NCBI GenBank assembly: GCA_964035545.1
Contig: OZ037773.1
Coordinates: 9,329,751 to 9,393,750, forward strand
Source of the DNA: Bugula neritina
Taxonomy: Eukaryota; Animalia; Bryozoa
Direction of reading: 5' to 3'
Length of the DNA stretch: 64,000 nt
Numbering within the stretch: position 1 is the first letter of the stretch; each line of letters opens with the position of its first letter. Under the pieces are notes generated by a model that did no database searches, was not told the DNA's origin, and worked only from the letters and a program-made list of their open reading frames with translations. Shown here one piece after another: positions 1 through 64,000 of the stretch. The position numbers and the translations under genes are program-made.

Positions 1-765
1 GCCAGGGTAGTTGGTTGATCAGAGCTCTGGTGTGTTCACTGTACAATCACAGCCGTGATGAGGATATTGAGACTATCTTCAGAAAAGTGAGTGATATCTG
101 TATTAATAAGTTTGTGATAGTTATACTAGCAGAGAGTTTAGCAATGCATCTTTTCTTTTAAACAAGTGAATGAATATTGATTAGGCTGCATATAGTTGCG
201 GGTTTTTTGTATCAAAAATGCATGATAGCTTCATATTATAACCTAAAGTAAACAATCATCTTTTAAGAACTCTAAGTGAAATTTTTGAGAGTGCTTTCTA
301 TACTTTTTACTATAACTGTAAAGAGGTAATATATAGTAACTTATAGTAAATGTGAATTTGGCACTTGTTATATATCACTGCTTTTCTTACTTTCCCATTG
401 CAAAAGAAGTACCACTTTGCTATGCATGCTATTCAATAGCCATGGTGCAGATTTAACCTTTAACAAATTATGTCAGCGTTTGAATCAATAGCAATGTTGA
501 ATGAACTTTTACTTCCACCTGTAGTATGAAAAATTTCCCTATTATAATAACTAAATAGAGATGTAAAACCAAGCTTACATTTCGTATTAGCAGAATAAAA
601 TGAAATTATTCTTTACAGGTAAAGAATATTGTCAGAGCAAAGAGTATCAAAGCATCTAAAAAAGACAGCCATTTAGGAGGACAGCAACCAACTTTTGAGA
701 GTTTTCCACCAAAGGGAAGACAACTTTGCTTGTTTCCTAGGTTCAGTCCTCCACAAACTGAGTGA
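1..765 (+). CDS. A0: last two exons of a caspase gene (small subunit); 5' part lies outside the window, presumably another ANK-caspase
   Basis: Exon <1-86 reads RQGSWLIRALVCSLYNHSRDEDIETIFRK, then GTGAGT. Exon 619-765 follows tttacAG and reads VKNIVRAKSIKASKKDSHLGGQQPTFESFPPKGRQLCLFPRFSPPQTE*. Both are nearly identical to the last exons of A1-A4. Confidence 0.85.
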
Positions 766-1631
766 AAGCTATAAAGAGAAAAGATTTAGTAAATCTGTTT
801 GTATAAATCAAACTGTTAAACTTGAAATCACTTGCAGTAGTCTTTTTAATAAAAGTCACACATTCGGTGTCTGGCAGCTCATTTATGTATCTTTACTAAC
901 AATGACAATTATTAATTGAGTTTGTTTTAGTATTTACGAGTTTTATATTCTATTCCCACCTTGTTTTGTTTCTTTATATTTGTTACTGTACATGCTGACA
1001 ATGGCAGCAACAGTATTAGCTGCGTGCATGCCTTAAATATCATATTGCATATAATATATACTGTTTAAAAACATACGTAGCTGGGTTCCTTTTTTATGCC
1101 CATGTAAGCCTTAATAAAGCTTTCCAAAACCTTTGATGGATGTTGTGAGAAAGTTTTAATAAAGAAAATATAATTTTTTTCCAGTTGAATTTACAAAAAC
1201 AAACTTAAAAAAAAATCAAATTTCATACGGGAATACGTGAATAATTTTGAGAACAGCATTGGTCACAGTGGCTATAGAGTTATCCCCCCTAACTAGAGCA
1301 AACGGCGAGAAGTTATGATCTATATCAGAAAGATATCTCTCTGGCTGTAACATACATTATGTGATTATAATGTTATTTTGGAAGACAGAAAAGGCAATTC
1401 CAAAAATTTTGTAGCCAAGTGCTATAGTTACAAATTAGCAACACATATACTGTATAACATTTAGAAGCTGGGAAAACCTACTGAATATGCCGTGGAATAT
1501 TGATAGAAAAATGATTTTGAAGCAGCTATTGGTAGCTGGAGGGAGAAGTTGCAATTATAGAAACTGATAATACAGGCATGAAAGCCCTAGGGCAAAAATA
1601 GAACATTAATTTACATAATACAGTCGATAAT

Positions 1632-2393
1632 CACGGGCTTTCCATGTACCGATCTCAGATCGATCTCGCTGAGATCGATCTGAGAAATGTGCTCAGATCG
1701 ATCGTTTTTCCATGAGAGTGTCAGATCGATCTCTCAAAGTTGCCTCCTCTTAAGTGAAGGATACTTTAAAATCATAATTTGTTCACCTATTTGAGTGATT
1801 AAAGCTACTACTGTTGAAAACGAGATGGTTGTAGCCTAAAATTTAATCCCAGCTATAAACTATACGCAGCAAAGCTTTCAGTGTATGGTAATTTGGCCAA
1901 TTTAAAATAATTAATTTTAATTTTTTAGCTTGACAGCTTATATAAAATTAATGGCTGTCTTGCAGATTATTAATAAACTTACAGGACTCTTGGGCTTAAA
2001 ATTACAAAGAAAATAGCTAATGAAACTAAGTTTTAATAGTCATTTAAATTCGATTTAAATTCTCCCATTTTTTTACCTTCTACTGCATATAATTGAGTTT
2101 TCTTAATCATTGTACTGAAAGTCAAAGTTTTGGCATCTGAAAAGGTGGCTATCATAATTATTTAATACTTTGCTTAGTAATTATCAATAACTTATCATTT
2201 TTATTAGCAGACAACATTGTAGCGCTCAATCTTTTTCTACTTCTCAGATCAATCTTTCGTCTTTCCATGGTCTTATTGACATGAGATCGATCTGAGTTCG
2301 AGCTCCACAGACCGACCAGCGTCGGTCTTTGGCGTCTTTCCATAGATCCATCTCGCTGAGATCGATCTGAGATCGGTACACGGAAAGCCGGTG
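1632..2393. mobile_element. Non-autonomous DNA transposon (MITE) with CAC...GTG ends and 3-bp AAT TSD; CMC/CACTA-like
   Basis: Left end CACGGGCTTTCCATGTACCGATCTCAGATCGATCTC and right end GAGATCGATCTGAGATCGGTACACGGAAAGCCGGTG form imperfect TIRs. Many subterminal AGATCGATCT palindromes. AAT on both flanks. The paralogous empty site at ~10971-10995 (cagtcgataatattacc) has a single AAT. Second copy at 57516-58292. Confidence 0.85.
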
Positions 2394-2955
2394 AATATTA
2401 CCTCAGTAACTGTAGTAATTATGAATGGAAAGTTTATGCAAAGTGATCAGAAAAGCTATCATTTAGGGGTCATGTGAAGTGCTATTATAATATAACAGAC
2501 TCTAAACATTGTTTCTGAGGTGAGAAGAGCCATTGAGCTACAGTCGCTACTGCATTTCTTTTGAAAGCTCGTATAAAGCTCTGCTGTTATTATATATAGA
2601 ACAATGTCCAATGAACAAACCAATATTCCATCTAGAAGAATTCCCACCATTAGACAACACAGATATCATTTATTAGGTTAAAGAATTGAAATATAATAAA
2701 TGTGCATAATATTAAATTAAAATATAATATTATACTGAGTTTTAGCTATTCAATAATTTGATCTTAGAAATTAAAGTGATTGCAGAAGGGAAGGTTTTGG
2801 AAAGCCTCCCTTCTCAATATTGCTAGTTAAATTTGAATTGTTATCCAGAGTGACCAAAATTACAATAACAATACTTTATATTTTTTATAACTATTCCTAC
2901 TGCATAGTGATTTTATGCCATTAAATGAAAAACAAACATTTAAAAACTACTACAG

Positions 2956-3621
2956 GAAATGCTGGCTGTGGTGAAACAAGAAACCCAGAGTTCAGAGTAT
3001 GAAGCGTTAGGGGTCAGTGCCCTATAGTGATCATGTCACATGGAACCAAGAACCAACTCTATGGTACAGACAACTGTCCTGTTCAACTTACAGACCTGCT
3101 CTCTCTCATTTCTTCAAATGCATTCCAAGTGATGGCCAACAAGCCCAAGATTGTTGTTATCCAGGCAGACTATATAGAGGTATACTTGAAGCGCTAAAAT
3201 AAAACTCAGGCAAATTTATAGCAGCTGTCCCTGTGAGAGAAACCCTTGATGGAAGAGGTTTTTGTTAAAGCTTGCTAAGAGCTTGAAGCGGTAGAATGCC
3301 AAACTATATATAATGTAGGATTTTTATACTTTTAGAAAAGTTTGAAACCTATTGATATATGCAGGATGCACCCTGAAAAAATCTTTCCATCTCGGCCTAA
3401 ATGTGCTATATTAAGCTAAAGTGCATATTATTTCTCCACACACGACTTACATGCATAACACATTTTTAATATATTGATATTATTCATTGTAGACTGCAGA
3501 CCTGATGCTTTAGACTTTAGAGCAATCTCCAAATTCTAGTGAAGCAATTCAACAACCACATCTTTTGTTTGAAAAGAGCTTAGCTACTGACGACTTGTTT
3601 TTTTGCAAGCAAGCTGGAATG
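2956..3621 (+). pseudogene. Relic of a divergent caspase (p20 exon plus linker/p10 exon), copy 1
   Basis: After tacAG: EMLAVVKQETQSSEYEALGVSAL, then a TA insertion giving a stop, then MSHG...KPKIVVIQADY. A second exon at ~3492 (DCRPDAL...DDLFF) is homologous to the DRPDSLG...DDLFLL exon of A1-A4. No catalytic Cys. Confidence 0.75.
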
Positions 3622-3736
3622 GTAAATTTATACTGCTCACAACAACATTGACCTATTTCAAGGTTTTGGTACACAACAGCACAGCTGCAGCAATATCTTA
3701 TCCTTCTCTTTATTTCATTCTTTAATAAATATATTC

Positions 3737-4357
3737 CTCCCGTTTCATTTCTCCATGACTCTGTGATAAGTTCAGTAAGCCTCAGTATAAGCTCCGCACC
3801 ACCTTTCTTCAACAGCTCAAGATAAATACCATCAACTCCTGTTGACTTCCTGTCAGAGAGTGCATTTACAGCTCTCATAACCTCTGTGACATCGAAACAT
3901 TCATTCATCCATTCCTGGGTTGGCTGCTGGTGTATGTGACTGGTGATGTCAGGGTCCACATTTCCTGTTTCATTTAGGAGTGTTTGAAAATAATATACTC
4001 TGTCCATCTCTGCATCAAGTCGTCTCTCTGGGTGAGGAGGGTGTGGCTGTCCTTGTCAAACAGTTGGTCTGGGTAGTTTACGGGTGGACCTCAGACTGCC
4101 CTCATGTTTTCATAGAAGCCTCTCATGTCATTTTGGTTAGCTAGTTCTTGCAGTTCAGCTGGCTTGTCTTGCCACCATTTGTTCTTTAGTTCACGCCATT
4201 TCTTTTGAAGTGCTCGGTTATATTCCTTGTACTTTCCTTTAGTTTTCCTGGTCGATCGGTTCGTGACAACGGAACGTGCTAAGTTCCTCTCACTTAATAG
4301 GTCTTGTAGTTCTATGGAGTGTTCATCAAACCAGTCCTCGTGTTTTCTGCCAACAGT
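3737..4357 (-). mobile_element. RTE-clade-like LINE fragment (region between endonuclease and RT), copy 1
   Basis: Minus-strand translation contains EYFQTLLN...EVMRAVNALSDRKSTGVDGIYLELLKKGG, typical of RTE ORF2 upstream of the RT. Frameshifted. Duplicated along with the tandem unit. Confidence 0.75.
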
Positions 4358-5282: not shown

Positions 5283-8200
5283 ATGTCTGCCAATGAGTTA
5301 CACACTCTGATAGACGATAGAGACAAGTTTGAAGAACAACTTCTAATGCTGCCTGTTGAAGACAGGTTTGAAGCTTTAAGAGAAGAGATTGGGGAAGAAA
5401 GCCAAACGGTGTTGCATATTGCAGCGACTAATGACTTAACACATATTCTAAAGTTAGTTATTGACAATGTGACAGAAGAGAGTCTGTTAGAATTGCTGAT
5501 GATTCAAGATGAAGATGGAAGTACACCAGTACACTATGCTGCCAGGGGTAATTATACAGGGCACATCCAGTGTATTGTAGATTCTATACCAGAAGAACAT
5601 TTGTGCAAAGTGTTTGCTATGAAGAATGAAACTGGAAACACAGCTGTTCACTGGGCAGTTGGAAATAGTAACACAGATATGTTGCAGTGTTTGTTCAAAT
5701 CCTTACCTCCAAACCAGATAGGTGAATTACTCAACATACAGAATCACAGTGGCAACACAGCTTTACACACTGCAGCAGATAGTGATAGTTTGGAAACTAT
5801 AGAAACTTTGCTCAAGAGCCTGAAGAATGCGACTGATTTAGAGAGACTTTTAGAAACAACAAATGAAGAAGGAAGGACTGCTATTTATTATATGGTAACT
5901 AAGAACCATTGTGATATAATAAAGTGGATGACAAGCACTTTGGATATGAACTTGCTAGAGAAACTGCTTAGCATACAAAATCAATCTGAATTCACTGCAG
6001 TTCATTGTGCAGCATTAAATGGCCATACCAACATAATGAGATGCATAGCAGAAACATTGTCGGAATCTATGTTATTTAGGCTGCTTAGTATTAAATATGA
6101 TGATGGTTGGACATGTGTTCACAAAGCAGTAATGGGTGGTCACACAGATATGATAAGATGCATAACAGAAAAGCTGCCAGAATCTGTGTTATCTAGGTTG
6201 TTTAATATTAAAACCAAAGATGGCCTTACATGTTTTCACCTCGCAGCAATGGAAGGTCATGCTGAGATTGTCGACTGCATATCAAATTCACTAACGAATA
6301 CGGAGCTAAAAAAAATACTTGCTAATCCAAATAAAGTTGGACAGACAGCAATGCACTTTGCGGCTGAATCTAATAAGAAAATGGTAGTGAGCAGCATCTT
6401 TGAATTTCTCCCAAAAGATGAAATTTTGGAAGTTATCTTTGGGAAAAACAACAAAAAAAACACACCATTCCATTTGGCAGTGATGAGTGGTCACACTGAA
6501 ACTTTGAAACTTATGATCCGTTTTCTCTCAGTTGAAAATCTGTTGAGTTTGCTGGAGATAGAAGACTCGGACTCTTTAACTCCTCTACACATTATAGCAG
6601 GAAATGGACATGCATTGGCATTAGAAGTCATTTCCTGCCATTTACCTGTTACTAGCTTATATGAAATGTTCACTGCTAACAGAAACCAGTGGAATGAAAC
6701 AGTGGCTCATATTGCAGCTGATAAAGGTCATGTCGAAGTTTTGGAAGTGGTTTTCAAAAACCTGTCATCAGAGGAAACTTTACAGCTGCTAGAAAAGAAA
6801 AATGATGATAGAAAAACAGCACTAGACCTAGCAAAAATAGCTAAACACACAGAAGCAGTAACTTTTATTAGAGAAAGTCAGAAAAAGGCGGAAAGAGCCA
6901 TCTCAGGTATATGTCTATTGTAAAATATAAAAAATCATGCTCTCTAAATGTTAAAGCATTATTTTTAAAACTTAATTGACTATCATTAAAGATATTCTTA
7001 TGTAATAGTGAGTTGGTGATAGCATAGATATTATGCCACATTGCATGTATGAGATATCTCACTGAAATATTATATATGCTACTAGTGAAGATTGTCTCAA
7101 TCACAGAACTATATAAGCCTGCACACAGTAAAATAAATTCTTTTGAAATAAAATCAAAACATGAAAGTAAAATGGCCATTTTCATGGCTCTAGCCTATAA
7201 GCTATATTTATTAAAAGTTTATATAGTATCTTTTAAAGCATTATATACTTGTATTTTCTAATATATGCCATTGTTTACAAGAACATTTGAAACTTTTCAA
7301 AACACAATTAATTCGCAAATATCTTATTTTATTACTAAAATATGCATGACTTCCTATCTTTTAAAATAATTCAGGTATAACTCATGAAGAAATTTTTAAG
7401 GTTAGAGTTCAACTGTGAAACTAAATAAATATAAAATATAGATTTTGATTAAAATGGCAAAAATAATTTACCAATATTTATTAATTTACTAAAATTTACT
7501 AAAGAAGATAATGTTTTAGACTGCACAGCTACTCTTGAAGCTAGTTCAACACTCCGACCTAATTGGCCAATCACAGAAGAGGACATAGTTGAGAAATATT
7601 TGAACGAGACAAATGTACATACAGATACCATCAACCTACCTCTAAGAACAAGTAGGCCTACACAACCAAACACAGAAGATATGTACGACTGCAAAAAGGT
7701 TTAGGGATTGACCTGCATTAAATTTTGATAAAAAATAAATATTTTTTCTATTTATGTGTATTATAACACCATTATTATAGTTTGGTTATGAAATTTAGTT
7801 TCTGGCAGTGCTATAGTTTAAATTATGTGTCATTTGACAGCTAATGTAGTTTTGTATATTGTACTCGTAGTTGTAAATCACTTATATAACTGCATTCTAT
7901 ATTGAGCACCTTTTTGACATAGCTGTGAACTGCGTTTAAGTAGACAGCTCTCAAGCTAAAAAAAATCAACTACTGAATGTATATTCACTGTTTTAGAAAT
8001 ATTACAAGATGACATCTCCCACCAGAGGAAGGTGTCTTATCATCAACAATAGAGACTTTAAAGCTCTCTCTGCACCAGACCAAGTAGAATTTGAAAAGAG
8101 GAAAGGTTCAGATGTTGATGTGGCAAACATTGTCAATGTCTTTACTCAGCTTAGTTTCATCTGTGAAGTTCACACTAACCTCTCCAGTGAGGTAAGCTAA

Positions 8201-9233
8201 GTTCACACCAAGCTCACCAGTAATTAAGATGTGGTAAGGGATATAGTGAATGAATGATGCAAAACTTCTATATATACCGAACAGATTAAGGGGTACGAGT
8301 ATTCCACCATTTTCTCTATGACCTTAGGACCACTGCTATAATACTAGTTTAGTAACAAAATTATTGAAAAGTTAATTTTATATTAGGCAAAGTTATTGCA
8401 ATGAAATAAAAAAAGCTACAGTAATGAAGTAGTTTTTAAAAATGTTGTCTTTTAAGTTCTATTTTGATCTAATCTTGTCAAGGCTATTATTAGCTCAAGG
8501 TCATCCTTTTTATTCTAAAAGGTGAAAATATGAAATGCGTAGAAATATTTTGAATTTGTAGGGAATGTTCCGTGTCTTGAACTGCGAAATACAAAATCCA
8601 GAACATGAGAGATTCGGAGTTAGTGCCTTTATCATAATGACTCATGGGACTGAAAACTCCATCTACGGTACAGATAGTCGCCCTGTCAAACTGTCAAAAA
8701 TCTTGGATCTTATGTCTCCATACGTATTCAAAGCCATGGCTGGTAAACCTAAGATAGTTGTCATCCAGGCCTGTTCTGGTGGTGAGTTTTATCAGAACTA
8801 AAGAATCATTGAACTGGTCCTTTCTCAAATTTTAATTCTGGGTTGACTCTTACAGATCTATGGTTACATATCTACATTATATGTATATACGTACATATAT
8901 ACTTATATATATACGTACATATATACTTATATATATACGTACATATATACTTACATATATACTTACATATATACTTACATCTATACATACACCTGTACTT
9001 TGTCTTGCAGACAGGCCAGACAGTCTAGGCTTCTTTACAGAGGACTCTCCAAGCGCTGGGGGAACTGTCAGTGATAGCAAATGGAAATCTGATCCATTTC
9101 CTGGAGATCACTTGTCTACTGATGACTTGTTCTTGTTGAGAGCCAGTTTTCTCAGTGAGTACAATCACATCTGATGGATTTAACTAGTGCTGAATGCTCA
9201 ACGTTAAATATAATTAATAATTTTAATAAAATA

Positions 9234-9297
<64 letters not shown>

Positions 9298-10110
9298 CTG
9301 CATGTTTCGTGTGTTGCAGGTTTCCGTTCAGCGAGACATACTCGTCAGGGTAGTTGGATGATCAGAGCTCTAGTTTGTTCACTGTACAATCACAGCTGTG
9401 ATGAGGATATTGAGACTATCTTCAGAAAAGTGAGTGATATCTGTATTAATAAGTTTGCAATATAGTTATACTATAGCAGAGGGTTTGGCAATGCATCTTT
9501 TCTTCTAAACAAGTGAATGAATATTGATTAGGCTGCATAGTTGCAGGTTTATTTGTATCAAACATGCATGATATAGCTTCATATAACTTAAAGTAAACAA
9601 ACATCTTTTAAGAACTCTGAGTGAAATATTTGAGGGTGCTTTCTATACTTTTTACTATAACTGTAAAGAGGTAATATAGTAACTTATAGTAAATGTGAAT
9701 TTGGCACTTGTTATATATCACTGCTTTTCTTACTTTCCCATTGCAAAAGCAGCGACACTTTGTTATATGCATGCTATTCAATAGCCATGGTGTAGATCTA
9801 ACCTTTAACAAATTATGTCAGCGTTTGACTCAATAGCAATGTTGAATGAACTTTTACTTCCAGCTGTAAGGTGAAAAAATTCATTATTATAATAAGTAAG
9901 TAGAGATGTAAAACCAAGCTTACACTTTGTATTAACAGAATAAAATGAAATTATTCTTTCCAGGTAAAAGATATTGTTAGAACAAAGAGTATTGAAGCAT
10001 CTAAAAAAGACAGCCATTTAGGAGGGCAACAACCAACTTTTGAGAGTTTTCCAACAAAGGGAAGACAGCTTTGCTTGTTTCCTAGATTCAGTCCTCCACA
10101 AACTGAGTGA
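5283..10110 (+). CDS. A1: ankyrin-repeat caspase, ~872 aa, apparently intact (13 ANK repeats + linker + C14A p20/p10)
   Basis: Exons 5283-6906, 7520-7698, 7997-8191, 8562-8781, 9011-9154, 9320-9429, 9964-10110. All introns GT-AG; total 2619 nt, open. Motifs: RGRCLIINN, RKGSDVD (S1 Arg), IMTHG (catalytic His), KPKIVVIQACSG (catalytic Cys), SARHTRQGSW. Confidence 0.9.
8880..8990. repeat. Intronic AT-rich 24/12-bp tandem repeat (tatatacgtacatatatacttata)
   Basis: Visible tandem units in A1 intron 4; produces the spurious IYIYVH ORFs. Confidence 0.7.
9237..9294. repeat. (TA)n microsatellite in A1 intron 5
   Basis: Perfect TA run; the paralogous run at 17815-17892 is longer. Confidence 0.95.
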
Positions 10111-11546
10111 AAGCTTAGAGAAAAAGTTTAGCAAATCTGTTTGCATAAACCAAACTGTTAAACTTGGAGTCACTTGCAGTAGTCTTCTTAATAAAAGTCA
10201 GGTGTTTGCTGCCTGGCAGCTCATTTATTTTATTAACAATGACAATTATTTATTTAGTTTGCTTTAGTATTCACAGACTTTGTATTCTATTTCCACTTTG
10301 TTTTGTTTGTTTATATTTGTTACTGTACATGCTGACAATGGCAGCAACAGTATTAGCTGCGTGTGCCTTAAATATCATATTGCATATAATATACTGTTTA
10401 AAAACATATGTAGCTGGTTTCCTTTTTTATGCCCATGTAAGCCTTAATAAAGTTTTCCAAAACCTTTGATGGATGTTGTGAGAAAGTTTTAATAAATAAA
10501 TATAATTTTTTTTTCAGTTGAATTTACAAAAACAAACTCAAAAAAAGAAAAATCAAATTTAATATGGGAAAAATACTTTGAATGATTTGTGAATAATTTT
10601 GAGAACAGCATTGGTCACAGTGGCTATAGAGTTATCCCCCCTAACTAGAGCAAACGGCGAGAAGTTGCGATCTATATTAGAAAGATATCTCTCTGACTAT
10701 AACATACATTATGTGATTATAATGTTATTTTGGAAGACAGAAAAGGCAGTTCCAAAAATTTTGTAGCCAAGTGCTATATAGTTACAAGGTACAACACATA
10801 CTGTATATATAACATTTAGAAGCTGGGAAAACCTACTGAATACCCCGGGGAATATTGATAGAAAAATGATTTTGGAGCAGCTATTGGTAGCTGGAGGGAG
10901 AAGTTGCAATTATAGAAACTGATACTACAGGCATGAAAGCCCTAGGGCAAACATAGAACATTAATTTACATAATACAGTCGATAATATTACCTCAGTGTA
11001 ACTGTAGTAATTATGAATGGAAAGTTTATGGCAAAGTGATCAGAAAAGCTATCATTTAGGGGTCATGTGAAGGGCTATTATAATATAACAGACTGTAAAC
11101 ATTGTTTCTGAGGTGAGAGGAGCCATTGAGATACAGTCGCTACTGCATTTCTTTTGAAAGTTTCTATAATAAGCTCTGCTGCTATAGAACAATGTCCAAT
11201 GAACAAACCAATATTCCATCTAGAAGAATCCCCACCATTAGACAACATAGATATCATTTATTAGGTTAAAGAATTGAAATATAATAAATGTGCATAATAA
11301 TAAATTAAGATATAATATTATTTTGAGTTTTAGCTATTAAATAATTTGATCTTAGAAATTAAAGTGATTGCAGAAGGGAAGGTTTTGGAAAGCCTCCCTT
11401 CTCAATATTGCTGCAGGTTAAATTTGAATTGTTATCCAGAGGGACCAAAATTACAATAACAATGCTTTATATTTTTCATAACTATTCCTACTGCATAGTG
11501 ATTTTATGTCATTAAATGAAAAACAAACATTTGAAAACTACTACAG

Positions 11547-12200
11547 GAAATGCTGGCTGTGGTGGAAAAAGAAACCCAGAGTTCAGAGTATGAGGCGTTA
11601 GGGGTCAGTGCCTTAGTAATCATGTCGCACGGAACCAAAAACCAATTTTATGGTACAGACAACTGTCCTGTTCAACTTACAGACCTGCTCTCTCTCATTT
11701 CTTCAAATGCATTTCAAGTGATGGCCAACAAGCCCAAAATTGTTGTTATCCAGGCAGACTATATAGAGGTATACTTGAAGCGCTAAAATAAAACTCAGGC
11801 AAATTTATAGCAGCTGTCCCTGTGAGAAACCCTTGATGGAAGAGGTTTTTGTTAAAGCTTGCTAAGAGCTTGAAGCGGTAGAATGCCAAACTATATATAA
11901 TGTAGGATTTTTATACTTTTAGAAAAGTTTGAAGCCTATTGATATATGCAGGATGCACCCTGAACAAATCTTTCCATCTTGGCCTAAATGTGCTATATTA
12001 AGCTAAAGTGCATATTATTTCTCCACACACCACTTACATGCATAACACATTTTTAATATATAGATATTATCTATTGTAGACTGCAGACCTGATTCTTTAG
12101 ATGAATCTCCAAATTCTAGTGAAGCAATTCAACAACCACATCTTTTGTCTGAAAAGAGCTTAGCTACAGACGACTTTTTTTTTGCAAGCAAGCTGGAATG
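11547..12200 (+). pseudogene. Divergent caspase relic, copy 2 (QADYIE in place of QACxG)
   Basis: ORF 11550-11786 MLAVVEKE...VIMSHG...KPKIVVIQADYIE. The next exon at 12080 has a frameshift in a poly-T run. No upstream or downstream exons recognised. Confidence 0.75.
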
Positions 12201-17811: not shown

Positions 17812-17814
<3 letters not shown>

Positions 17815-50000: not shown

Positions 50001-52163
50001 ACCAGACCAAGTGAAACTTGATAAGAGACAAGGTTCAGATGTTGATGTGGCAAATGTTTTGAATGTCTTCACTCAGCTTAGTTTCATCTGTGAAGTCCAC
50101 ACTAACCTCTCCAGTGAGGTAAGCTAATTTCACACTAAACTCTCCAGTTTAAGGTGAGCTAAGTTCACACTAACCTCACAAGTAAGGTACGTTAAGAGTT
50201 ATAGCTAATGAAGTATACAAAACTTCTACCCTACAGATCGAGTGTAAGCAAAGCATCCTATATTCATAAATTATATCAAACTCAAAAAATAAATATTTCT
50301 CAAATTTTACAGCATGAGAGGTGACCTTGTAATCAGTGGTCAAACTGAGGGGTCAGCAAGGATTTGGGTACCCCACCATTTTTGCTAGACCTTGGCCACT
50401 GCTAGTATTAGTCTAGCTAATGCAATGGCTCTATTGAAAAATTTAACATACTTAACAGAATTGCTATATAATGCAAAGTTATTTCAATGATCATTCTAGT
50501 GGAAAAAAATTACAATAATTTTTAAAAATTTTGTCTGTTATAGACTCCATTTAGATCTGATCTATAAGTCAATGCTGTTATTAGCTCAAGATCATCCTTT
50601 TCATTCTAAAAGGCGAGAATATGAAATGTGTAGAAATATTTTGAATTTGTAGGGAATGCTACATGTGTTGAACCGTGAAATACAAAACACAGAACATGAG
50701 AGATTTGGAGTTAGTGCCTTTATCATAATGACTCATGGGACTGAAATCTTTCTCTACGGTACAGATAGTCGCCCAGTCAAACTGTCGGACATGTTGGATC
50801 TTATGTCTCCATACGTATTCAAAGCCATGGCTGGTAAACCTAAAATAGTTGTCATCCAGGCCTGTTCTGGTGGTGAGTTTTATCATTTAACTATAATCCA
50901 TTACTTTTTTCTGATATTGAGATGGAGTAGGCTGTTACATTTAATATCTATGTTTACTCACATCTATACATACATAAGTATACTTACGTGTTTACTTGCA
51001 TTATTCCTAATATCATCTTGTAGACAGACTTTTATTTGCATCGACACTTATTATATATATACTTGTATATACTTACATCTATACTTACATAATATATTAT
51101 ACTTACATATATACTTATATCTACATACACCTGTACTTAGTCTTGTAGACAGATCAGATCCTCTAGGCTTCTATACTGACGACTCTCCAAGCACTGGGGG
51201 AACAACTCCCAAATGGAAATCGGATCCATTTCCTGGAGATCATTTGTCTACTGATGATTTGTTCTTGTTGAAAGCCAGTTTTCTCAGTGAGTACAATCAC
51301 ATCTGATGAAGTTAACTAGTGCTGAATGCTAAACGTTAGATAATTAATAACTAACATAATATAATAATATAATCATTATATATATGATATATACATATAT
51401 GTATACAACTTATTATGTTAATAAACTTGTATAACCTTCTTGACTGACAATCTTTTAGGTAACACAGTCTGTATGTTTTATGTGTTGCAGGTTTCCGTTC
51501 AATGAGACATACTCGTCAGGGTAGTTGGATGATCAGAGCTCTGGTGTGTTCACTGTACAATCACAGCTGTGATGAGGATATTGAGACCATCTTCAAAAAG
51601 GTGCATGGATGATACGGTACTAATAAGTTTATGATAGCTACTAACAGAAAGGCAAAAATTTTGAAAGATATTCTTTATACTTTTTTATTACAGCTTTAAA
51701 GAAGTAATAAATGCAGTAATTAATATATAGACTGTTAGTTTACTTATACTTAGTATAGACTACCGCTTTTTTGCTTTTTTACTCTCACAGTGCAAACAAG
51801 CAACACTAAGATGTACATGCTTTCCAATAGCCATGGTACAAATTCAATCTCCTAACAAGTTAGATGAATGCATGACTAAATAGCGGTGATGGAAAAACTT
51901 CTACCTCTAGTTGTAGCATTAAAAATGTATGATTATAATAGCTAGATGAATGTATAAGAAGTAAGAACTATATAAGCGTACACTTTATATAAAAAAAATA
52001 AATTCGGATTTTACAGGTAAAGAATATTGTTAGAGCAAAGAGTATTGAAGCATCTAGAAGAGATTTCAATATAGGAGGGCAGCAACCAACTTTTGAGAGT
52101 TTTGCAACTAAGGGAAGACAACTTTGTTTGTTTCCTAGATTCAGTCCTGCACAAACCGAGTGA
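47067..52163 (+). CDS. A4: ankyrin-repeat caspase, ~631 aa, intact; ANK exon and first linker exon are of the kinase-gene (K2/K4) type
   Basis: Exons 47067-47892, 48220-48306, 49439-49611, 49924-50118, 50653-50872, 51149-51286, 51491-51600, 52017-52163; 1896 nt, open. THG, QACSG and SMRHTRQGSW are present. Confidence 0.8.
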
Positions 52164-53449: not shown

Positions 53450-56400
53450 ATGACAAACATGTCAGGTGCAAGACTCCGTAAGTTGGTTCAAGAAGAAAAT
53501 GTGGCAGGGTTTATTCGAGACTTTACATCACTATCTTTGGATACCAAGTTAGCAGTTTTACAAGAACAGGACTTTTGTGGAAAAACGATAATGGGGCTAG
53601 CTGCAGAGCTGTCTTTGCCAGAAGTAGTTGAACAGATAGTAGACAGCATACCCCCGGACGAACTTTGTGACATAGTTGCAATAAAAGACAAGCATGGAGA
53701 CACTCCTCTACACATTGCTGCATACTTTGGAGAAGAGAAAATAGTGAAATACGTACTCAATTCCAAACTAACCACTGCTCAACTGCGCCACATCTTAAAT
53801 ATAAGAAATAACAACAGCACCTCAGTTCACCAACGTGCAGTTAGAGAAGGACATCTTAGAATGGCTGACACAATTTTTGACCGACTACAGCCGATTGAAA
53901 GAGAAGAAGATAAAGATTCATTGCTTCGAGAAGCTGTTGAGTCAAGTCAAACGAGCAGAGTTGAAGCCTTTATGAATTCCATGTCTAAAGTTGAATTGTA
54001 TAGTCAGCTAGCCGCTCAAGATAAAGCTGGTAACACAGCTGTTCACATTGCCGCTCACTATGGATACAAAGAGATGATAGAACTGATGATACAAAGATTA
54101 GAACAACCTGATTTATACAAATTGCTAACAATACAAAACAACAAAGGATTTACTATCTTACTTGTAGCAGTGTGGAACAAAAACATTAAAACAGTAACAC
54201 TAATTTTGGACAGCTTACCTCCAGCTGCTATGAGCGAAATACTTCAGATTCAAAACAAGCATGGTGCTACTGCATTTTCAATCGTTGTACAGAATGGAGT
54301 GATGGAAATTTTAGCGCTTATGGTAAGAAAACTCTCCAATGCTGATCTTCATAGGCTAATTGTGCTAGCAGACAATGATGGTGATACAGCTATGCACTGC
54401 GCTGCTTTTGGGAACCAGGCATACGCTGCTGTTTTCCTCTTAACCAGACTAACAGGTGAAGAAGCCATGGATGTATTACAAGTAACAAACAACAATGGTT
54501 TTACTCCCATAGAATATGCTAATAGCGATGCAAACATAGATTTTGTTTCATCTATAATAACTGTTCAGAAACAAAAAGAGGCTAACCTAAAAGGTGAGAG
54601 CAAACAAATGCGTGTCCTTATGCAGAATTGATTGGTAAATTAATTTGAAAAAAAATATTTTTTTTTAGCACAAAAATATCTTCAACCTTAGTTATTAGTA
54701 TCCTTATTGTGTCAAAAAATATTTGGCTATCCATTAACATGAGTTGTGGCTATTTGCCACTTGCTAGTTGCTACTTATTAATTGCTAGTTGCTAGTCAGT
54801 TGCTAATTACTAATAACTAGTAGCCACAGTCACTAGTTATTATAAAGTTATTTTAAAGTTACCAGTTTTAGTTACTATATAGTTATGCAATTAGTTGTTA
54901 TTTATTAGTTGATTAATATAGTTTATTCAGTGATAATGATTGCATTTGCAATTGTATGATGTAAAAAGTTAATAGAATTTAATTATATATATGCTATTAA
55001 CCTGAGATATATCTTATGTTACTATAGAACCAGCTGTACCAGCTAAAAGTATTGCACAAACAGCTGAAAACACAGAACTGGAAAATAGCGACACATCAAG
55101 CTGTGAATATTACGAAGACCCTGATAGTGCAAAAGGTTAGTTTCATGAAGAAATGATAAGCAATGACTCACCTAACTAAAAAGTATAAAAAATACATTAT
55201 ATGTTTTATTGAAAATAAAGTTTGGTGTAATACATTAGTGAGGTGAATTGATCTCAGAACTTAAACAAGCCTGTTGCTAAGTGAAGTCATGACAGTCAAC
55301 ACACTATTCACTAATTGTTTTATATCTTTTCTCTATACAACTATAGAAACATATTTCTCCAGCGTGTGATGCATATATATGTTAAACAGGATGTATTACA
55401 GGTGTCCTACATGCAGGTGTCCTGCAGGTGTCGGTTAACAGCACCAGCTAACCATGAGTAATAATAATAATTAGTTTTTGTTGCATGTATGATGATGCTA
55501 TATGAACAGTGAGATTCAAAAGTTTACCTATAGCATGCTTTTATGCTTATAGTCTCACTATTCAGAGGCTAAAATAGCTGTCGTCAATTTAAACTGTGGG
55601 AGAATTTTAAGTGTGGGAAAATGTATAGCCAGTTAAGAAAATCAGCAACTGTAAACTTTTCGAATTTTGTTCCTGCTTTCAGCAAAATCAAAGCTTGAAG
55701 AGTTTCCTCAAACTATAAGCTCTGTCAGCAGTGGGATTTCTAGCAATGCTGAAGCTTCTTTAGTAGAACGTAAGTTCTAAACTTCATAAACCCAGATCAA
55801 CTATTTAATTAATTTATATATCATCATCTTTAAACACTGAAACTAATTCATTTTATTATGTACTAATGTGTTTTAAAATGAAGACAACTAAATGACATAT
55901 AGGTGAAATCATATAATTATCAACAGTAAGTTACAGATGCTTACATATTGCATAATAAGATCTGTGATGGTTATTTGTATATACAATGCTGAGCTTTCTT
56001 TAGTTCTTCAAGAGTTAAGTCTAGGAAAGAAGTTGGGTAGTGGCGGACAGGCGACTGTGTATGAAGGCACTTGGTTGGGTACTCCGGTGGCTATCAAGAT
56101 GTTAGAACATTCTGTTGAAGCAGACTTGTCAAAGATAGCTGAGGGATACTTTGATGAATACAATGCCATAAAGTAAGAAATAAACTATAATAAAGATTGT
56201 TACAAAACATTTTATTCAGGGAAAACATTTCTTTGGTTAGCAGTAAATAATAAGTAAATGGCTCTTTACTGATATGTACCCCACCTGATCATTATATATA
56301 ACATAAATTATGGAAATGCATTAGCTATGGTTCTCAAACTAGTTTGTTGTTTCAATGTCTAACTTTTACTGTAGGTCTCTGCGACACCCAAATATTGTGC

Positions 56401-59400
56401 AGTTTTTTGGTGTTGGGCAGCTGCCAGAAGGAATTGGTCTGGTGATGGAGCTTTGTGACTCGGATCTAAAAGCCATGTGTGTGAAAATAAAAGCTGCTTC
56501 TCATTTGAAAGTTAGTGAATCTTTAGCAGTTATATAATAATATTTAAGCTGATTCAGGCAATGGGCAAAACTTTTACAAATCAAACTACTTACTCTGCAC
56601 TTTCATTAACTTTTGCAGTTTCTTCTTTTACTTTTTCTATAACCCTAAATTGTATGTTATAATAAACACTAACAACTACTACGATGCAGGCATTGTAGAA
56701 AGTAAAATCAGTGGTTTAAAGCCCGTTTTTAGCAATAGCAATCACAAGTACTACAGTAGAATGAAAAAATTAAAAATTCTTGCAAAGAATAGTGTACGCT
56801 TTTCATTTCACAGGTTATCTATAGTTAATATCAAAACATGTGATTTATGCAAACACAGACAGGGATAATGTTTACACAAAATTTAAGATTAGAGATACTC
56901 CAGCACTTGCATTAAGCAAGCAGGCTAGACATTTGTTAGCAATGGTGATCCTAAACGTATGACAGATATATGTGTCAGTATTATCCTTAATGAACACTTT
57001 GAGTGGTTAGAGTATTAAATATTTATAAGTATGCTCATTAAAGACCGGTGTTGTATTGCAGTAAAGGGAAACAACTCCAAAGTTACGTTTTGCCAGTTCT
57101 AACTTCTAAGGGAAAACTCGAAAAGTTGCAATTAAGCATAAATTGATAAAATTCCTGTTTATAGCACATTTTTTAATGTATGCTAGAGGAATCTAATACC
57201 TTATTGGTGCATGTTCACAATCAAACACAAAATTAGCAACCCATCAGCAAAGAAGTTATAGCCGCATGCATGTGAGCTAGTGACCGGTGCTATCTTGGAA
57301 AGGGCATCAAGTTATAATTGCTCTTACACTCCTTAGAAACCCCTCGAATCAGATGCTGCCAGCTTTGTGAGAAGGTGCTGCTGTAGAAACTTGTTTCAAT
57401 TAGTTGGTAGAAGTTGCATAATTTATAAGGAAACAATCTTAATTTCTGCTGGTAATTTTAACTGACCTTTTTAATCTAGCAGGTCAACTTGTTTTAAAGT
57501 AATACAGTCTGTAATCACGGGCTTTCCATGTACCGATCTCAGATCGATCTCGCTGAGATCGATCTGAGAACTGTGCTCAGATCGACTGCTTTTCCATGAA
57601 AGTGTCAGATCGATCTTGCGAAGTTGCCTCCTCTTAAGTGAAGAGTACTTTAAAAGTATAATTTGTTCACCTATTTGAGTGATTAAAACTACTACTGTTG
57701 AAAACAAGATGGTCGTAGTCTAAAATTTATTTCCAGTTATAAACTTTACGCAGCAAAGCTTTCAGTGTATGGTAATTTGGCCAATTTAAAATAATTAATT
57801 TTAATTTTTTAGCTTGACAGCTTATATAAAATTAATGGCTGTCTTGCAGATTATTAATAAACTTACAGGACTGTTAGGCTTGAAATTATAAAGAAAATAG
57901 CTAATGAAACTAAGTTTTAATAGTGATTTAAATTCAATTTAAATTCTCCCATTTTTTACCTTCTACTGCATTATAATTGAGTTTTCTTAATCATTGTACT
58001 GAAAATCAAAGTTTTAGCATCTGAAAAGGTGGCTATCATAATTATTTAATACTTTGCCTTAGTAATTATCAATAAGTTATCATTTTTATTAGCAGACAAC
58101 ATTGTAGCGCGCAGTCTTTTTCTACTTCTCAGATCGATCTGGCGTCTTTCCATGGTCTTATTGACATGAGATCGATCTGAGTTCGAGCTCTACAGACCGA
58201 CCAGCTCAGATCGACAGAGATCGATTTTTGACGTCTTTCTATGGATCGATCTCGCTGAGATCGATCTGAGATCGGTACATGGAAAGCCGGTGAATGAATA
58301 TTGGTTAAATATTGGTTCACATTACTATTGTTTATATATATATAATTATATATATATACATTATAGGAAGAGGTGCTAAAGATAATAAAAGACTCTCTGA
58401 GTGGGTTGGTGTACCTCCACAGCAGGAACATGCTCCACATGGACATCAAACCACACAACATATTGGTGAGTAACCTTTCCTCTCAAATCTGGTTCCAGCA
58501 TTAACTAATTCAATCACTGAAGAATATCATTTTTATAAATCTTCATTGCTATCATTAGCAAAGTGGCATTTACAATATTTCTGATACTTATATTTACAAT
58601 TGCTCATAAAAACCTTTATAAATATTGTATTTGTATTGATCAATACATATAGTTCTTTACGCTTATTCATAACTTCTTTTAACTATTTAAAGCTCCTTTT
58701 TATAGATTCAATCTGGCAAAGGGAAATTGGCAGACTTTGGCTTAACTGACTTTGTTGGAAATTTCAATGACATGACAGTCACTTACCAAACATGGCAAGG
58801 TCAGTCTCAATGGTTTCTTGGTTTACATGAAGGCACATTTTTATTTCTTTTAATATCCTAGGAACAACAACTCATTGTCCAGGTCCTTTGCAGATGAAAC
58901 CACATTCACTATAAAAAATTGTCTGCATATGTATATTATCTATAAAATATTACATCATTTGTCTCTAACTTCATGCTTCAAGAGTTCCATTTAAGCTTTT
59001 TGAGAAAACTGCACAGCATTGGTGTTGTTGTGGAAAGCTGCTTCCAAAATCTGCCTCATATAAAACTTATTTTAATTGTAAAATGCATGTCATGGTTACA
59101 GTTACTTTACCTGTAGACATCTAAGTTAATTGATTAATTAGGTTAAATTCTAAGATGTACATTGGGGGGTATTTTATAGCCTGCTATAGTTATTCTACAT
59201 TGACCAAACAGTGTGAATCTTAATGAGGCAGAATACTGTCCTTTTGAGGGCTATTTAATGGTCACAGCCAATCAGTGTGAGAGTTGATTGATGCTACACA
59301 TAATCTATGTGATTGTGACAGTGTTAAAGTTGACAGTAGTGTGACAGTTGATGCGGGTAGTGACAGCTAGTGTGACAAATTAATAGTTGATGAGTAGTAA

Positions 59401-60615
59401 CAGCTAGTGTAACAGTTGATGTGTATAGTGACAGCTAGTGTGACAGTTGATGTGTATAGTGACAGCTAGTGTGACAGTTGATGTATATAGTGACAGCTAG
59501 TGTGACAGTTGATGTGTATAGTGACAGCTAGTGTGACAGTTGATGTGTATAGTGACAGCTAGTGTGACAGTTGATTGGTAGTGACAGTTAGTGTGACAGT
59601 TGATGGGTAGTGACAGCTAGTGTGACAGTTGGATGGGTAGTGACAGCTGGTGTGTCAGTTAGTATGATAGTTGATGGGTAGTGACAGCTAGTGTGACAGC
59701 TAGTGAGACAGCTAGTGTGACACATAATGGGTAGTGACAGCTAGTGTGACAGTTGATGTGTATATAGTGACAGCTACAGTGTGACAGTTGATGTATATAG
59801 TGACAGCTATAGTGTGACACATAATGGGTAGTGACGGCTATATAGTGTGACAGCTAGTGAGACAGCTAGTGAGACAGCTAGTGTGACAGTTGAATGGGTA
59901 GTGACAGTTAGTGTGACACATAGTGAGTAGTGACAGTTAGTGTGACACATAGTGAGTAGTGACAGTTAGTGTGACACATAGTGAGTAGTGACATGTGTTG
60001 ATTTTGCAGGAACTCCAAGATATAGAGCCCCGGAGCTGCTACACAGAAAAGCACCTTCAAAAGCAGCAGACATGTGGTCTATGGGTGTGACAGCACTGGA
60101 GGCTTTAACTGGTAGGTTTACATGATGCATTATGTAACCCTTAAACCTTCATAACCTGCAGGTTTGCTAATTGCACTAGCTGTATCAAGTTTGTCATATC
60201 TTATAAGTTGAATATCAGCTAAAAATTTCAAGAACTTTAACATTATGTTATTTGTAGCCCTCTTCGTAGAATATCTTTATTAGCAAATCAATGCAGAACT
60301 GCATATATAATTTTACATGTATCCAATAAAATTTAGCTCCACTATAAAATTATTTGCGTAAGCAAAAACTGTGTCTTAAATTTTTTCTAATTTACTCACA
60401 TCTTAAACCTTGTAGGAAGCTCATTTTACGAAAACATGGTGAGACATAGAAGATCATTTGTGCCGAAGGATATTTTGGAAACGAGACTACCCTCAGCCTT
60501 GCAGAGCTTGTCTCACTATAATCAAGAAATATTTAAATTGGTGCTGAATTTTGATCCAGAAAAACGATCATCGGCTTTAGAATGGCTAAAGTGTCTGAAC
60601 AGCTACGAGTTGTAA
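53450..60615 (+). CDS. K3: ankyrin-repeat non-RD kinase, ~712 aa, intact; recent paralog of K1
   Basis: Exons 53450-54593, 55028-55135, 55683-55769, 56004-56172, 56375-56510, 58367-58465, 58706-58799, 60010-60111, 60416-60615. Every exon length equals K1, and all kinase motifs are intact. Confidence 0.9.
57516..58292. mobile_element. MITE copy 2 (same family as 1632-2393) in K3 intron 5
   Basis: Same TIRs and AAT TSD. The K1 site at ~34909-34930 (aatacagtctgtaatgaatatt) is empty. Confidence 0.88.
59315..59995. repeat. GTGACA-based minisatellite in K3 intron 7 (expanded relative to K1)
   Basis: ~680 bp here versus ~355 bp in K1. Confidence 0.85.
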
Positions 60616-62818
60616 AGAATGGATAAACTTGAATGCATGTTTTTGGTTTTCAAACTATTTTATGCATTGTGCTTTTAAATTTTTTAGCTTTCAATTAAAA
60701 AATTCAAGAAATACTGATGAAATATTATGAAAAAAAGTTGCAATGGTATAAAGTTTACAAGATAGTTGCAAAAATATTTTCTAATAGTGAGGAAATTCAA
60801 AAAACAAAAGCAAATTGATTAAATAATATTTAAATGAAAAATGAGATACAACACCTTATGGTTGCTTTTGTTTTTTAAATTTATCAACTGGTTTTCTTTA
60901 TTCAGTTGCTGTTGCTTACGCTCCAAAACTTCTTTTTCCTGTCAAACATAATAGTTAAAAGAAGTAAAATATTTTAGTAAGGAAAATTTAGCCAAGTGAC
61001 TTTGAGTTTTTTGAAATGAATTTATCAAGTAGATGTTTAGAATAAATAACTATCATGTTGCAGTTAGTTTGATTCTTTGAAATCTGAATTATTTAATAAA
61101 TGATATATTTTTAATCACACCCAGTGACTTTATGGCATTCAAAAAACAAACTATAGAAAAGTTACTATAGATAAGCCTATATAATATATAATTATAATCT
61201 GAAATTTGACATATAAGTGAATTTAATTCAACACTCTATATATTACTAAATTTCTATCTAAATAAAAGACTTATATTTACTTTTATTTTGATCAATTATA
61301 CAGCCCAAAAGTAATCTGGATTAATAAACAGAAAATAATTTTTACACGTAGACTTTGCTTATTTTAAAATCATAACTAATAATTATATTGTTCTAAATTA
61401 GGCATTTCATAAAAGCAATATGTACTTACGTTCTATTAAAAATAAAATTGATTTGAATTTCTATTATAAATCTGACTGAGATTATTGCTGACATTATGCA
61501 AACAGCAGTTGGCAAAGGGCCAGAATATTGGTTCGGTATAGTATCATGGATTCAAAGCAATAATATAGTTATAAATGTAGAAGTGTAGATGTTTTGCATG
61601 CAGACATTATTACACTTTATGTGCAAAATACAGCTAAAAGTGATATCTCACGCATGTATATATAGGCTGAAAGCTCAGCATTTAGCTTCCTTATACTTAG
61701 CAGCCCTATGTTATATTAAAGCATACAGTATGCTGTGCTATAGACATCTATATATTAGGTTATGGCAAAATATTACTTTGCTAGCTAAGAGTAATTATTG
61801 CTAATCTTTCTTTTAATTTTTTAAAAAGACAAGCCAACAAAAAACCAAATGATAATTTTCTTTGGTTTAAAAATAATGGACACTGCAAAGATAGGTACGT
61901 TATGCTGTATAATATAATACTTATTATTCAACGTTGCATGTTTCATCCAAATTTATACAAGTTTATACCAGCTCAAGCATGCTATCTTAAGTCAACTCGC
62001 AATTTTATACGTACATCAAGTTATCATTCTTATTCTTCCAGCTCAATCTCAACTCACAGTGTTTTATAAGTGTTGAACAATTAAATTGTTCAAACATAAC
62101 ATTTATATCATCTTATACTAGCTGTAATATTTAAAGCCTATGTCAACTATATATGGTGGTAAAATTTTGCTGTACCTCTTCTCTTACCTCTTCTTCTTTA
62201 GAAAGCACTAGAGCATGTAGCAAGTGGTGCTCCTCAATAGGTTGCAGTCTTTGGTTAGCTCGTACATGCATGTCAACTAGTTGTCAAATGACTAATGTGC
62301 ACATCATTACGTATAAATGTACATCACTTTTACCGTATAGAAAGTTTAGATTTAAGTTCTCGTACTGTCTTTGGTAAAAAGCTATTGTTATAATTGTAAC
62401 ATAGTCCTATCCTTTAGTGTACAGCAATGTATATCTATAAAACATCATGTTCTATATAGCACAGTCCTATAAATACCTGGTTAATTTAGCTTTGCATACC
62501 TATTAACCTCTGGTGTAGCACTTACCCTACTTTTGTTTGTATAAATCGCTGTGACTTATGACGTGTTAACTATGAGCTTAAACATTTTATAAGGATTGAG
62601 GCTAGTTTTGTCATATTCCAAAGGTCATTATCACTTTCCTCACCTTGAAGCAATGCTACTAAGATGAATTAGGTAAAGGCAATTGAACTATATCAGCCAA
62701 TCACATGCAGTTATTTGTTTACACTATATGTTATATATTATATGCGAGGTACTATACTAGGTCATTTAACAACTATATGCTGAGTATATAACTGTGTCTT
62801 ATAACTAATGTAGTGAAT

Positions 62819-63632
62819 ATGTCCACAAGTAAAAATTTTGATAGACTGTTGGAGTTGATAAAGGAAAAAAATAAAATTAGATTTAGGCAAAAGCTAAGTT
62901 CTCTAAGTGTTTCACAACGATTGGATGTTCTTAAAGAACAGGATGATCAACAGGTGACGTTACTTGAATGTGCAGCAGGATGGGGTCTTACTGAGATAGC
63001 AAAAGTTGTCATAGCTTTAGTACCAGCAAGTGAGCATTATAACATTCTAGCTATACAAGACATTAATGACGACACACCTCTCCATGTGGCAGCTTACTTT
63101 GGGCGGACAGGCATAGTGGAGCTTATAGCAAGTCTTCTGCTTACAGCTGATCTGTATCGTCTTCTGAGAATAAAAAACAAGGATGGGAATACTCCGATAC
63201 AATGTGGATTGAAGAACAGAAGAATTGAGACCGTGAAATTCAGTTTAAGGTGCTTTCCTGCAGCTGACATGTGTGAAGTGATTTCAATTCCAGACAATAA
63301 AGGAAACACTGTTTTGTCTTGGGCTGCACAGTATGGACTTATGGATGTGTTAGTACTGTGTGTAGATATTATTCCACCAGAAGAGTTGTATTCACAAGTT
63401 CTGGTAGCAGATAATGATGGTGACACAGTCATACATTGTGCTGCTTACGGGAACCAATCAGAAGCTGCTGTATACCTGCTTGACAAGTTGAAAAAAAGCC
63501 AGGTTGAAGAAATTTTAGAAATACAAAACAAAGAAAGTCACACTTTGATTAAATATGCAAACATTAAAGCTAACCATGAGTTTGTGACTCTAATTGAAAC
63601 TTATTTGAAAGATAGAGAAATTTTTCCAAAAG
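62819..63632 (+). CDS. K4: first (ANK) exon of the full-length paralog of K2; gene continues past the window
   Basis: ATG at 62819, open to AAAG/GTAAG at 63632. The C-terminal half and the following intron match K2 (38075-38850), so a kinase effector is expected downstream. Confidence 0.8.
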
Positions 63633-64000
63633 GTAAGGTTTAACAACCTGCTTTCAGCTTTGGTTGGAAACAATCAACATGATATTAAAATTTTGAGCTT
63701 TTGCATTATGCATAGTATATTATATTAGTACTCTTGTACGTGTTGGAAGTATGTAGGCCAAATTATTGTACACATGCAGTCAGGGTTGGGGTCAATTACA
63801 TATGAATGTAATTAATTACAATTGCAATTATATGAGAATTTGTCCATTACAAATACAATTATAATTACAGTTCAAATAAGTGTAATTAATCACTATTCCA
63901 ATTACTTTTGTTCTCCTTCTGGAGTCAAACTACAACGGGCAATTTTGACAACATACAGCCTTCTTTGTTCTCAGCAGTAACCAATAGGGTGACAAATACA

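Follow-up and report, generated by a model that had tools for sequence, protein, structure and literature searches.

In the bryozoan Bugula neritina, a cluster of tandem genes is predicted to encode two kinds of chimeric proteins on one plan—an ankyrin-repeat (ANK) solenoid, a short acidic linker, and then either a caspase or a protein kinase—and it is fairly probable that the ANK part serves as a regulatory prodomain. The cluster was analyzed in a stretch of 64,000 nt, in the following called the window (chromosome 9, contig OZ037773.1, positions 9,329,751–9,393,750), of the Darwin Tree of Life assembly tzBugNeri2.1, which comprises 216.00 Mb with 9 chromosomes and, apart from the mitochondrion, 320 scaffolds of up to 35.64 Mb (N50 24.8 Mb; PMC11480708). 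All coordinates are those of the window; a plus sign before a number counts from the window start on, and chromosomes are abbreviated as in C9 for chromosome 9. The window is AT-rich (G+C ~33%) and holds nine genes or gene parts in the order A0, A1, A2, A3, K1, K2, A4, K3, K4. The original prediction for this DNA had described them as co-oriented, and all nine indeed lie on the + strand where placed. They share one layout, in which a single-exon ANK array of 39-residue repeats is followed by caspase exons (A0–A4, the A-type) or by kinase exons (K1–K4, the K-type).

The gene models were built by hand from reading frames and GT–AG introns only, which makes them sequence-based predictions. Four predicted genes stay in frame throughout—A1 with seven exons, A4 with eight, and K1 and K3 with nine each—with a frame that is unbroken across six to eight canonical introns. 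The predicted A1 protein consists of 13 ANK repeats, a 60-aa linker exon, and the caspase; the predicted K1 protein consists of the ANK array, two short acidic linker exons, and the kinase. Splice acceptors and donors are conserved in all paralogs. Domains were classified exon by exon on contiguous DNA and not on spliced proteins. Hereby, the ANK exons match the Pfam family Ank_2 with E-values of 1e-17 to 1e-52, successive caspase exons match columns 1–48, 61–128, and 173–206 of Peptidase_C14, and successive kinase exons match columns 3–46, 55–90, 100–130, and 160–192 of Pkinase. The order of these Pfam matches is thus colinear with that of the exons. A kinase part had also been expected for K4, which is cut by the window end; its kinase exons were found just beyond it, at +65757..68252.

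The same layout recurs outside the cluster. Sampling covered the six loci on C2, C6, and C7 whose caspases are closest to the A-type: five carry a single-exon ANK array of 386–1009 aa about 1 kb upstream on the same strand, and the sixth bears retroelement ORFs (open reading frames) there instead of ANK. In two distant paralogs on C9 (8.25 Mb, L016:4024-4686, – strand; 6.75 Mb, L017:2263-4086, – strand), the last ANK repeat and the caspase p20 part even share one ORF. One such single-ORF ANK–p20 piece was searched against 1.84 billion representative proteins and yielded 124 matches. One of them, the 557-aa protein XP_067951279.1 from Watersipora subatra, goes by the name "PP6 regulatory ankyrin repeat subunit A-like" and combines Ank_2 with a full Peptidase_C14, and three proteins derived from metagenome contigs in the same match set are also ANK plus C14. 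For the kinases, the annotation of the 2020 Bugula draft gives the gene adjoining a K1-like ANK exon a 778-aa product that contains both ANK and Pkinase. Since frames, intron phases, and conserved splice sites fit together and the layout recurs at five of the six sampled loci, the ANK–caspase and ANK–kinase chimeras look real as far as models can tell, as the original prediction had supposed from the letters of the window. The check that it had suggested, a search for both architectures and for their linkage in related genomes, leads to an ANK-caspase in Watersipora and an ANK-kinase in the 2020 Bugula draft; the other ANK-caspase loci compared are not clustered with ANK-kinases.

The caspase part is that of an animal caspase. 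The best matches of its active-site exon in the PDB are CED-3 and caspase-3, and with these C14A-type caspases it shares colinear p20 and p10 parts, a catalytic His in the motif THG, a catalytic Cys in QACSG, and an SxR motif in p10. Both catalytic residues occur in all four copies A1–A4. The differences lie in the prodomain, which is an ANK solenoid here and a short peptide or CARD there, in QACSG in place of QACRG, and in the Trp of the caspase motif SWR, which is replaced (SAR, SMR, or STR). In A1, inspection by eye places KRKGSD, QAC, and SAR where the S1 pocket would be expected (Arg179, Gln283, and Arg341 in caspase-1 numbering). Two candidate self-cleavage sites are shared by A1–A4: NTED, which directly precedes p20, and (F/Y)T(E/D)D, which lies in the linker between the subunits.

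The N-terminal part of these caspases is where they depart from the initiator caspases with death-fold domains (caspase-2/8/9/10 and Dronc, acting in the PIDDosome, the death-inducing signaling complex (DISC), and the apoptosome). A long N-terminal interaction domain and Asp-rich, putatively self-cleaved linkers are common to both, and activation by induced proximity might be as well. However, Pfam found no CARD, DED, or DD there: the ANK exons match ANK families only, and the A1 linker exon and the stretch with the third exon of A4 match no family—in agreement with the absence of death-fold domains noted in the original prediction. The gene models of the window likewise hold no NACHT, NB-ARC, or other NTPase by Pfam; they consist of ANK, linker, and caspase or kinase only.

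The kinases of K1 and K3 look active, since the motifs VAIK, HMD (within HMDIKPHN), DFG, and APE are all in place; K2 has HMD, and its APE is changed to APG. With HMD in the catalytic loop of K1–K3, these putative Ser/Thr kinases are of the non-RD kind, as had been predicted. This missing Arg before the catalytic Asp is the only trait they share with the non-RD kinases of innate immunity (IRAK1, RIPK1/2, Pelle, and the plant XA21/FLS2 class); no death domain, LRR ectodomain, or TKL-type signature emerged for them. A further assignment as "RIP-type" is not supported: the three kinase exons searched in the PDB differ in which kinase group they match best, namely MLK1 and BRAF for the N-lobe exon, GCN2, DRAK2, CDPK, and IRE1 for the catalytic-loop exon, and CaMK1, MST4, and PAK for the activation-segment exon, with RIPK1 only at about the 30th place for one exon. 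Only the N-lobe exon leans toward the MLK-like TKL kinases. The domain order does not fit either, as K1 and K3 bear the ANK array at the N-terminus and the kinase at the C-terminus, whereas RIP kinases begin with the kinase and end in RHIM, DD, CARD, or ANK; RIPK4, ANKK1, and DAPK1 are built in reverse to K1 and K3, and the ANK period here is 39 residues. ILK and TNNI3K have the same order as K1 and K3, which is a likeness of layout.

The kinase family is small, with seven matches in the genome, five of which fall into the array and two on C6. The C6 pair (L018 at 1.40 Mb and L019 at 1.17 Mb) are ANK-kinases as well, with G-loop exons that share 62% and 44% identity with that of K1, and may be older members of the family. 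There is no match to caspase exon 4 within roughly 0.9–1.1 Mb of either of them, and the majority of ANK-caspase loci lack a neighboring kinase. The pairing of caspase and kinase is thus not a general one.

The ANK arrays keep a period of strictly 39 residues, as compared with the canonical 33, and comprise 7 or 13 repeats (275–541 aa) in the caspase genes. For the A4 array (47067–47891), AlphaFold predicts a solenoid with a pLDDT (predicted local distance difference test) of 92.8. In this model, each repeat would contain three helices and not the canonical two; Foldseek finds gankyrin, DARPins, and AnkB to be closest (template modeling (TM) scores of 0.65–0.73).

Between paralogs, these arrays change faster than the effectors to which they are joined. 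The ratio of nonsynonymous to synonymous substitutions (dN/dS) of the A-type is 0.45–0.59 for ANK versus 0.28–0.42 for the effector part, and between K1 and K3 it is 0.38 versus 0.25; overall it stays below 1 everywhere. Change in the A-type is concentrated in repeats 5–11 and, within the repeat, at positions 35–39, 1–2, and 9–11. Five positions were chosen beforehand as those that are randomized in designed ANK binders (38, 39, 2, 10, and 11). In the A-type, they show a dN/dS of 0.87–2.24, as compared with 0.34–0.46 for the 29 positions outside a wider, ten-position surface set, and their variability exceeds that of random position sets (permutation p = 0.0008)—in a test that aligns four A-type copies, three of them broken, has few sites, and includes loops that vary anyway. 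The A-type pattern fits a diversifying or a relaxed evolution of the binding surface and falls short of a proof of positive selection. The proposals of a sensing or docking role for the ANK arrays and of an immune or allorecognition function for the locus draw on this evolution of the binding positions, which is suggestive for the A-type and weak for the K-type.

In the mechanism that we propose, the ANK array would take the place of a CARD, DED, or DD prodomain as the regulatory, target-binding part of the protein. The caspase would be clustered or released when a ligand or partner binds the concave face of the array, and might then cleave itself at the xTED-like sites, i.e., at NTED before p20 and at (F/Y)T(E/D)D in the intersubunit linker. 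The kinases with the same type of ANK array could answer the same cue by phosphorylation. A likely setting would be regulated cell death in defense, allorecognition, or zooid turnover; an immune or allorecognition role would be plausible in a colonial animal. A more far-reaching version sees in the cluster a two-armed receptor family, whose ANK arrays would be direct ligand sensors, with one ANK specificity feeding into a caspase for death and, in the sister genes, into a non-RD kinase for signaling. Such a family would manage without an NTPase switch or a death-fold adaptor, would diversify through gene conversion, through phase-1 exon shuffling, and as repeats are gained or lost, and would serve immunity or colony allorecognition. 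We put this forward tentatively and think it unlikely.

Developmental tissue turnover is a serious rival to the immune role. Accordingly phrased, these genes would belong to a cell-death toolkit of lineage-specific paralogs for polypide regression, metamorphosis, and budding, with the ANK array as a scaffold or a means of localization and not as a sensor of non-self. Bryozoans undergo a cyclic degeneration of their polypides, and the caspase family to be accounted for is very large: the genome holds at least 177 exon-level matches to Peptidase_C14 and 122 matches to the A1 active-site exon. ANK-caspases are, judged by these matches and by the sampled loci, a genome-wide family in Bugula neritina, and repeat arrays before caspases are a genome-wide habit. 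Copies that are at least 83% identical to A1 are confined to this array, and the A-type caspase is only about 26–29% identical to its best local matches among the set of 124. The N-termini are diverse as well, and dN/dS below 1 overall would also suit a toolkit under constraint. On the other hand, many copies are broken or recombined and the binding-surface positions of the A-type change fast, which fits families in an arms race better than a conserved developmental toolkit. Close relatives are also scarce: in a word-based protein search, the A1 ANK exon had no match at E≤1e-20, the A4 active-site exon gave no candidate, and the close relatives of the K1 ANK exon were Bugula proteins only, among them "hypothetical protein EB796_013034 [Bugula neritina]" with 89% identity. 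Taken as the whole explanation, a developmental toolkit thus strikes us as improbable, although not strongly so.

As for the diversity of N-termini, caspase exons at seven loci (L001–L006 and L008) adjoin ORFs of 570–690 aa whose motifs, LRR-like and P-loop GTPase, suggest LRR-Roc-COR when read by eye. This suggests a second large caspase family with a different, sensor-like N-terminus.

Several observations weigh against a sensory ANK prodomain that controls both effectors. A5, a caspase gene of the array beyond the window, reads NTEE at the NTED site. The K-type arrays show no clear excess of change at the binding positions. Three of the five A-type copies compared are broken, and some of the ANK divergence may for this reason reflect relaxed constraint. 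The three kinase exons searched in the PDB point to different kinase groups. Finally, the 2020 Bugula draft—annotated by AUGUSTUS with transcriptome hints (PMC7576161)—gives the K1-like ANK exon as a stand-alone protein of 392 aa.

The last point touches the fusion itself, as ANK exon and effector exons might be separate genes: the former an ANK-only gene that ends past the donor, the latter a transcript of their own from an internal start. Every ANK ORF continues for 5–13 codons beyond the donor before it meets a stop, and the linker of the caspases offers in-frame Met codons. However, A-type and K-type ANK exons, which are only 24–29% identical in tblastn alignments, bear their phase-1 GT donor at the same point; four genes stay in frame across all of their junctions; ANK precedes caspase at five other loci and is joined to p20 within one exon in two paralogs; and joined models exist both for the neighboring gene of the same 2020 draft and in RefSeq for Watersipora. 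We regard separate genes as a decidedly improbable alternative to the ANK-first chimeras.

The extent of the cluster becomes clear from mapping the whole array by tblastn with 30 kb added before the window and 40 kb after it. It spans ~97 kb, from about –10.3 kb to +86.8 kb, and comprises 13 units on one strand, which are in order copy A (a QAD pseudo-caspase), B (of which A0 is the 3′ end), A1, A2, A3, K1, K2, A4, K3, K4, K5, A5, and a K6 fragment; unrelated ORFs flank it. Comparison of the window with itself shows that whole units are duplicated in tandem, introns and spacers included, at 76–95% identity. A second kind of caspase gene with the motifs SHG...QAD, absent from the count of the original prediction, belongs to the array as well: a relic of it precedes each A-type unit, and a full copy lies upstream of the window.

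A turnover by birth and death, as had been predicted, is borne out by broken copies, changes in repeat number, mosaic stretches, and an ANK module that moved between effector types. Broken are B, A2, A3, and K2, to which three caspase relics and the K6 fragment are to be added. A2 carries a single TAC>TAG change in its active-site exon, where A1, A3, and A4 read TAC. In K2, the ANK exon is missing roughly its first 410 nt. The ANK exon of A3 contains two surplus bases within an A-rich run; the corresponding copy of the 2020 draft (L027:2354-4000) has lost the frame at this A-run too, there by +1 instead of +2, and the lesion is for this reason probably real and old. The downstream caspase exons of A3 nevertheless stay open with a dN/dS of about 0.3. 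B and A1 are identical over codons 79–273 and differ strongly beyond them; this mosaic suggests gene conversion, and B has exactly one extra 117-nt repeat relative to A1. The caspase genes A4 and A5 carry an ANK and linker exon of the K2/K4 type (83% DNA identity to K4), and their ANK exons group with each other. With phase 1 at the end of all ANK exons and linker exons of phase 1-1, such swaps between effectors stay in frame. The 2020 draft has K1-type ANK and linker directly before K2-type linker and kinase exons (L027:8559-16544 versus window positions 29399–45222) and is without ~6.9 kb of the window (the K1 kinase exons and the truncated K2 ANK), i.e., related genomes differ in structure here. 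The array is, to judge from its copies, the product of tandem duplication and unequal crossing-over, with mosaic copies and with gain and loss of whole 39-residue repeats.

That neutral churn should account for all of this—a recombination-prone hotspot of segmental duplication in which most copies decay and signals of selection stem from pseudogenes and gene conversion—is very unlikely, for although the broken copies and relics, a retroelement and large microsatellites inside the array, and the old frameshift of A3 are what it would produce, A1, A4, K1, and K3 have open frames throughout and retain all catalytic motifs, ANK framework positions and effector exons keep a dN/dS of 0.25–0.46, and the exons of K1 and K3 (94–100% identical) are more alike than their introns (88–95%).

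The positions of all features are collected in Table 1. The insertion 3′ of A2, which is absent from the A1 unit, is probably a truncated retroelement; its minus-strand ORF matches RVT_1 with E=3e-25. The K2 intron between kinase exons 5 and 6 holds a perfect 2-kb heptanucleotide microsatellite, (TTGTGCC) x 285, at 41616–43607, and the matching site of K5 bears a G+C-rich simple repeat at about +75364..75949. Internal tandem repeats of ~78–80% identity occupy positions 59314–59993 of a K3 intron. No Pfam family was found for the minus-strand ORFs 22940–23626, 3552–4055, 12508–12978, 21299–21700, and 58132–58482 or for the plus-strand ORF 20974–21444.

Table 1. Predicted genes, gene parts, relics, and insertions in the window, and caspase loci elsewhere with LRR-Roc-COR-like ORFs
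Feature	Position	Strand	Remarks
A0	1–762	+	3′ end of ANK-caspase gene B; part of exon 6 at 1–86, last exon at 619–762; rest lies 5′ of the window; located by blastn with A1 exons and tblastn
QAD-type pseudo-caspase relic	2389–3729	+	exon 4/5-like only; holds a TGA
A1	5283–10107	+	intact ANK-caspase, 871 aa, 7 exons
A1, ANK exon	5283–6906	+	13 ANK repeats
A1, linker exon	7520–7698	+	
A1, caspase exons	7997–8191, 8562–8781, 9011–9154, 9320–9429, 9964–10107	+	THG...QACSG in 8562–8781
QAD-type pseudo-caspase relics, further copies	10984–12310; 21624–22952	+	Peptidase_C14 E=5e-10 for 11535–11783
A2	13862–18762	+	ANK-caspase with one in-frame stop (TAG at 17269–17271); every splice site kept, otherwise open
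Retroelement-like insertion	19373–21350	–	~2 kb, 3′ of A2; RVT_1 ORF 19524–20669
A3	24517–29535	+	ANK-caspase with frameshift in the ANK exon (+2 nt at 25562–25563); six downstream exons open
K1	30825–36901	+	intact ANK-kinase, 711 aa, 9 exons
K1, ANK exon	30825–31968	+	
K1, linker exons	32370–32477, 33081–33167	+	
K1, kinase exons	33399–33567, 33770–33905, 34986–35084, 35327–35420, 36301–36402, 36705–36901	+	VAIK, HMD, DFG, APE
K2	38058–45195	+	ANK-kinase with 5′-truncated ANK exon (38058–38531); kinase exons open; APE changed to APG
A4	47067–52160	+	intact ANK-caspase, 630 aa, 8 exons; ANK exon and first linker exon of kinase (K2/K4) type
A4, ANK exon	47067–47892	+	
A4, first linker exon	48220–48306	+	
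A4, caspase exons	49439–49611, 49924–50118, 50653–50872, 51149–51286, 51491–51600, 52017–52160	+	
K3	53450–60612	+	intact ANK-kinase, 711 aa; exon DNA 94–100% identical to K1
K4	62819–64000	+	ANK exon 62819–63632; linker and kinase exons run past the window end to about +68252
LRR-Roc-COR-like ORFs beside caspase exons	C7:7.66, C7:7.68, C7:5.08, C3:4.51, C1:32.87, C6:6.13, C6:15.61 Mb		read by eye

By sequence, these proteins belong to the caspase, ANK, and protein-kinase families and are neither death-fold initiator caspases nor NLRs nor, by their domain order, RIP kinases. A comparison with NLR and R-gene clusters and with the fungal and bacterial conflict proteins that join repeats to C14 or CHAT can be drawn as an analogy only (PMC8195603, PMC7159879): a repeat plus an effector, tandem birth and death, mosaic copies, changes in repeat number, and a fast-evolving surface might be seen as common features. 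In contrast to those systems, the cluster has no NACHT or NB-ARC, places the repeats first and the effector last, and uses an animal C14A caspase. The nearest relatives in layout are the Watersipora protein and the other ANK-caspase (C2, C6, C7) and LRR-Roc-COR-caspase loci, which represent different subfamilies. The ANK-then-kinase layout is already known from ILK and TNNI3K, and the ANK-then-caspase layout seems to be undescribed; no description of it in an animal was found in the literature, although coverage was incomplete and this is weak evidence.

Bryozoan cell-death and immune genes are almost unstudied, and public annotation hides genes of the present type under names like "PP6 regulatory ankyrin repeat subunit A-like," "hypothetical protein," or "ANKFY1." The cluster shows how introns of the same phase let a recognition module move between protease and kinase genes. 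The activation of caspases in animals is ascribed to death-fold prodomains or to upstream caspases; throughout the present gene family, a long ankyrin solenoid appears to stand in for the death-fold prodomain. If the ANK array controls the protease, this would be a new way of coupling recognition to caspase activation—and would provide animals with a counterpart of the conflict proteins in which fungi and bacteria combine repeats with a protease.

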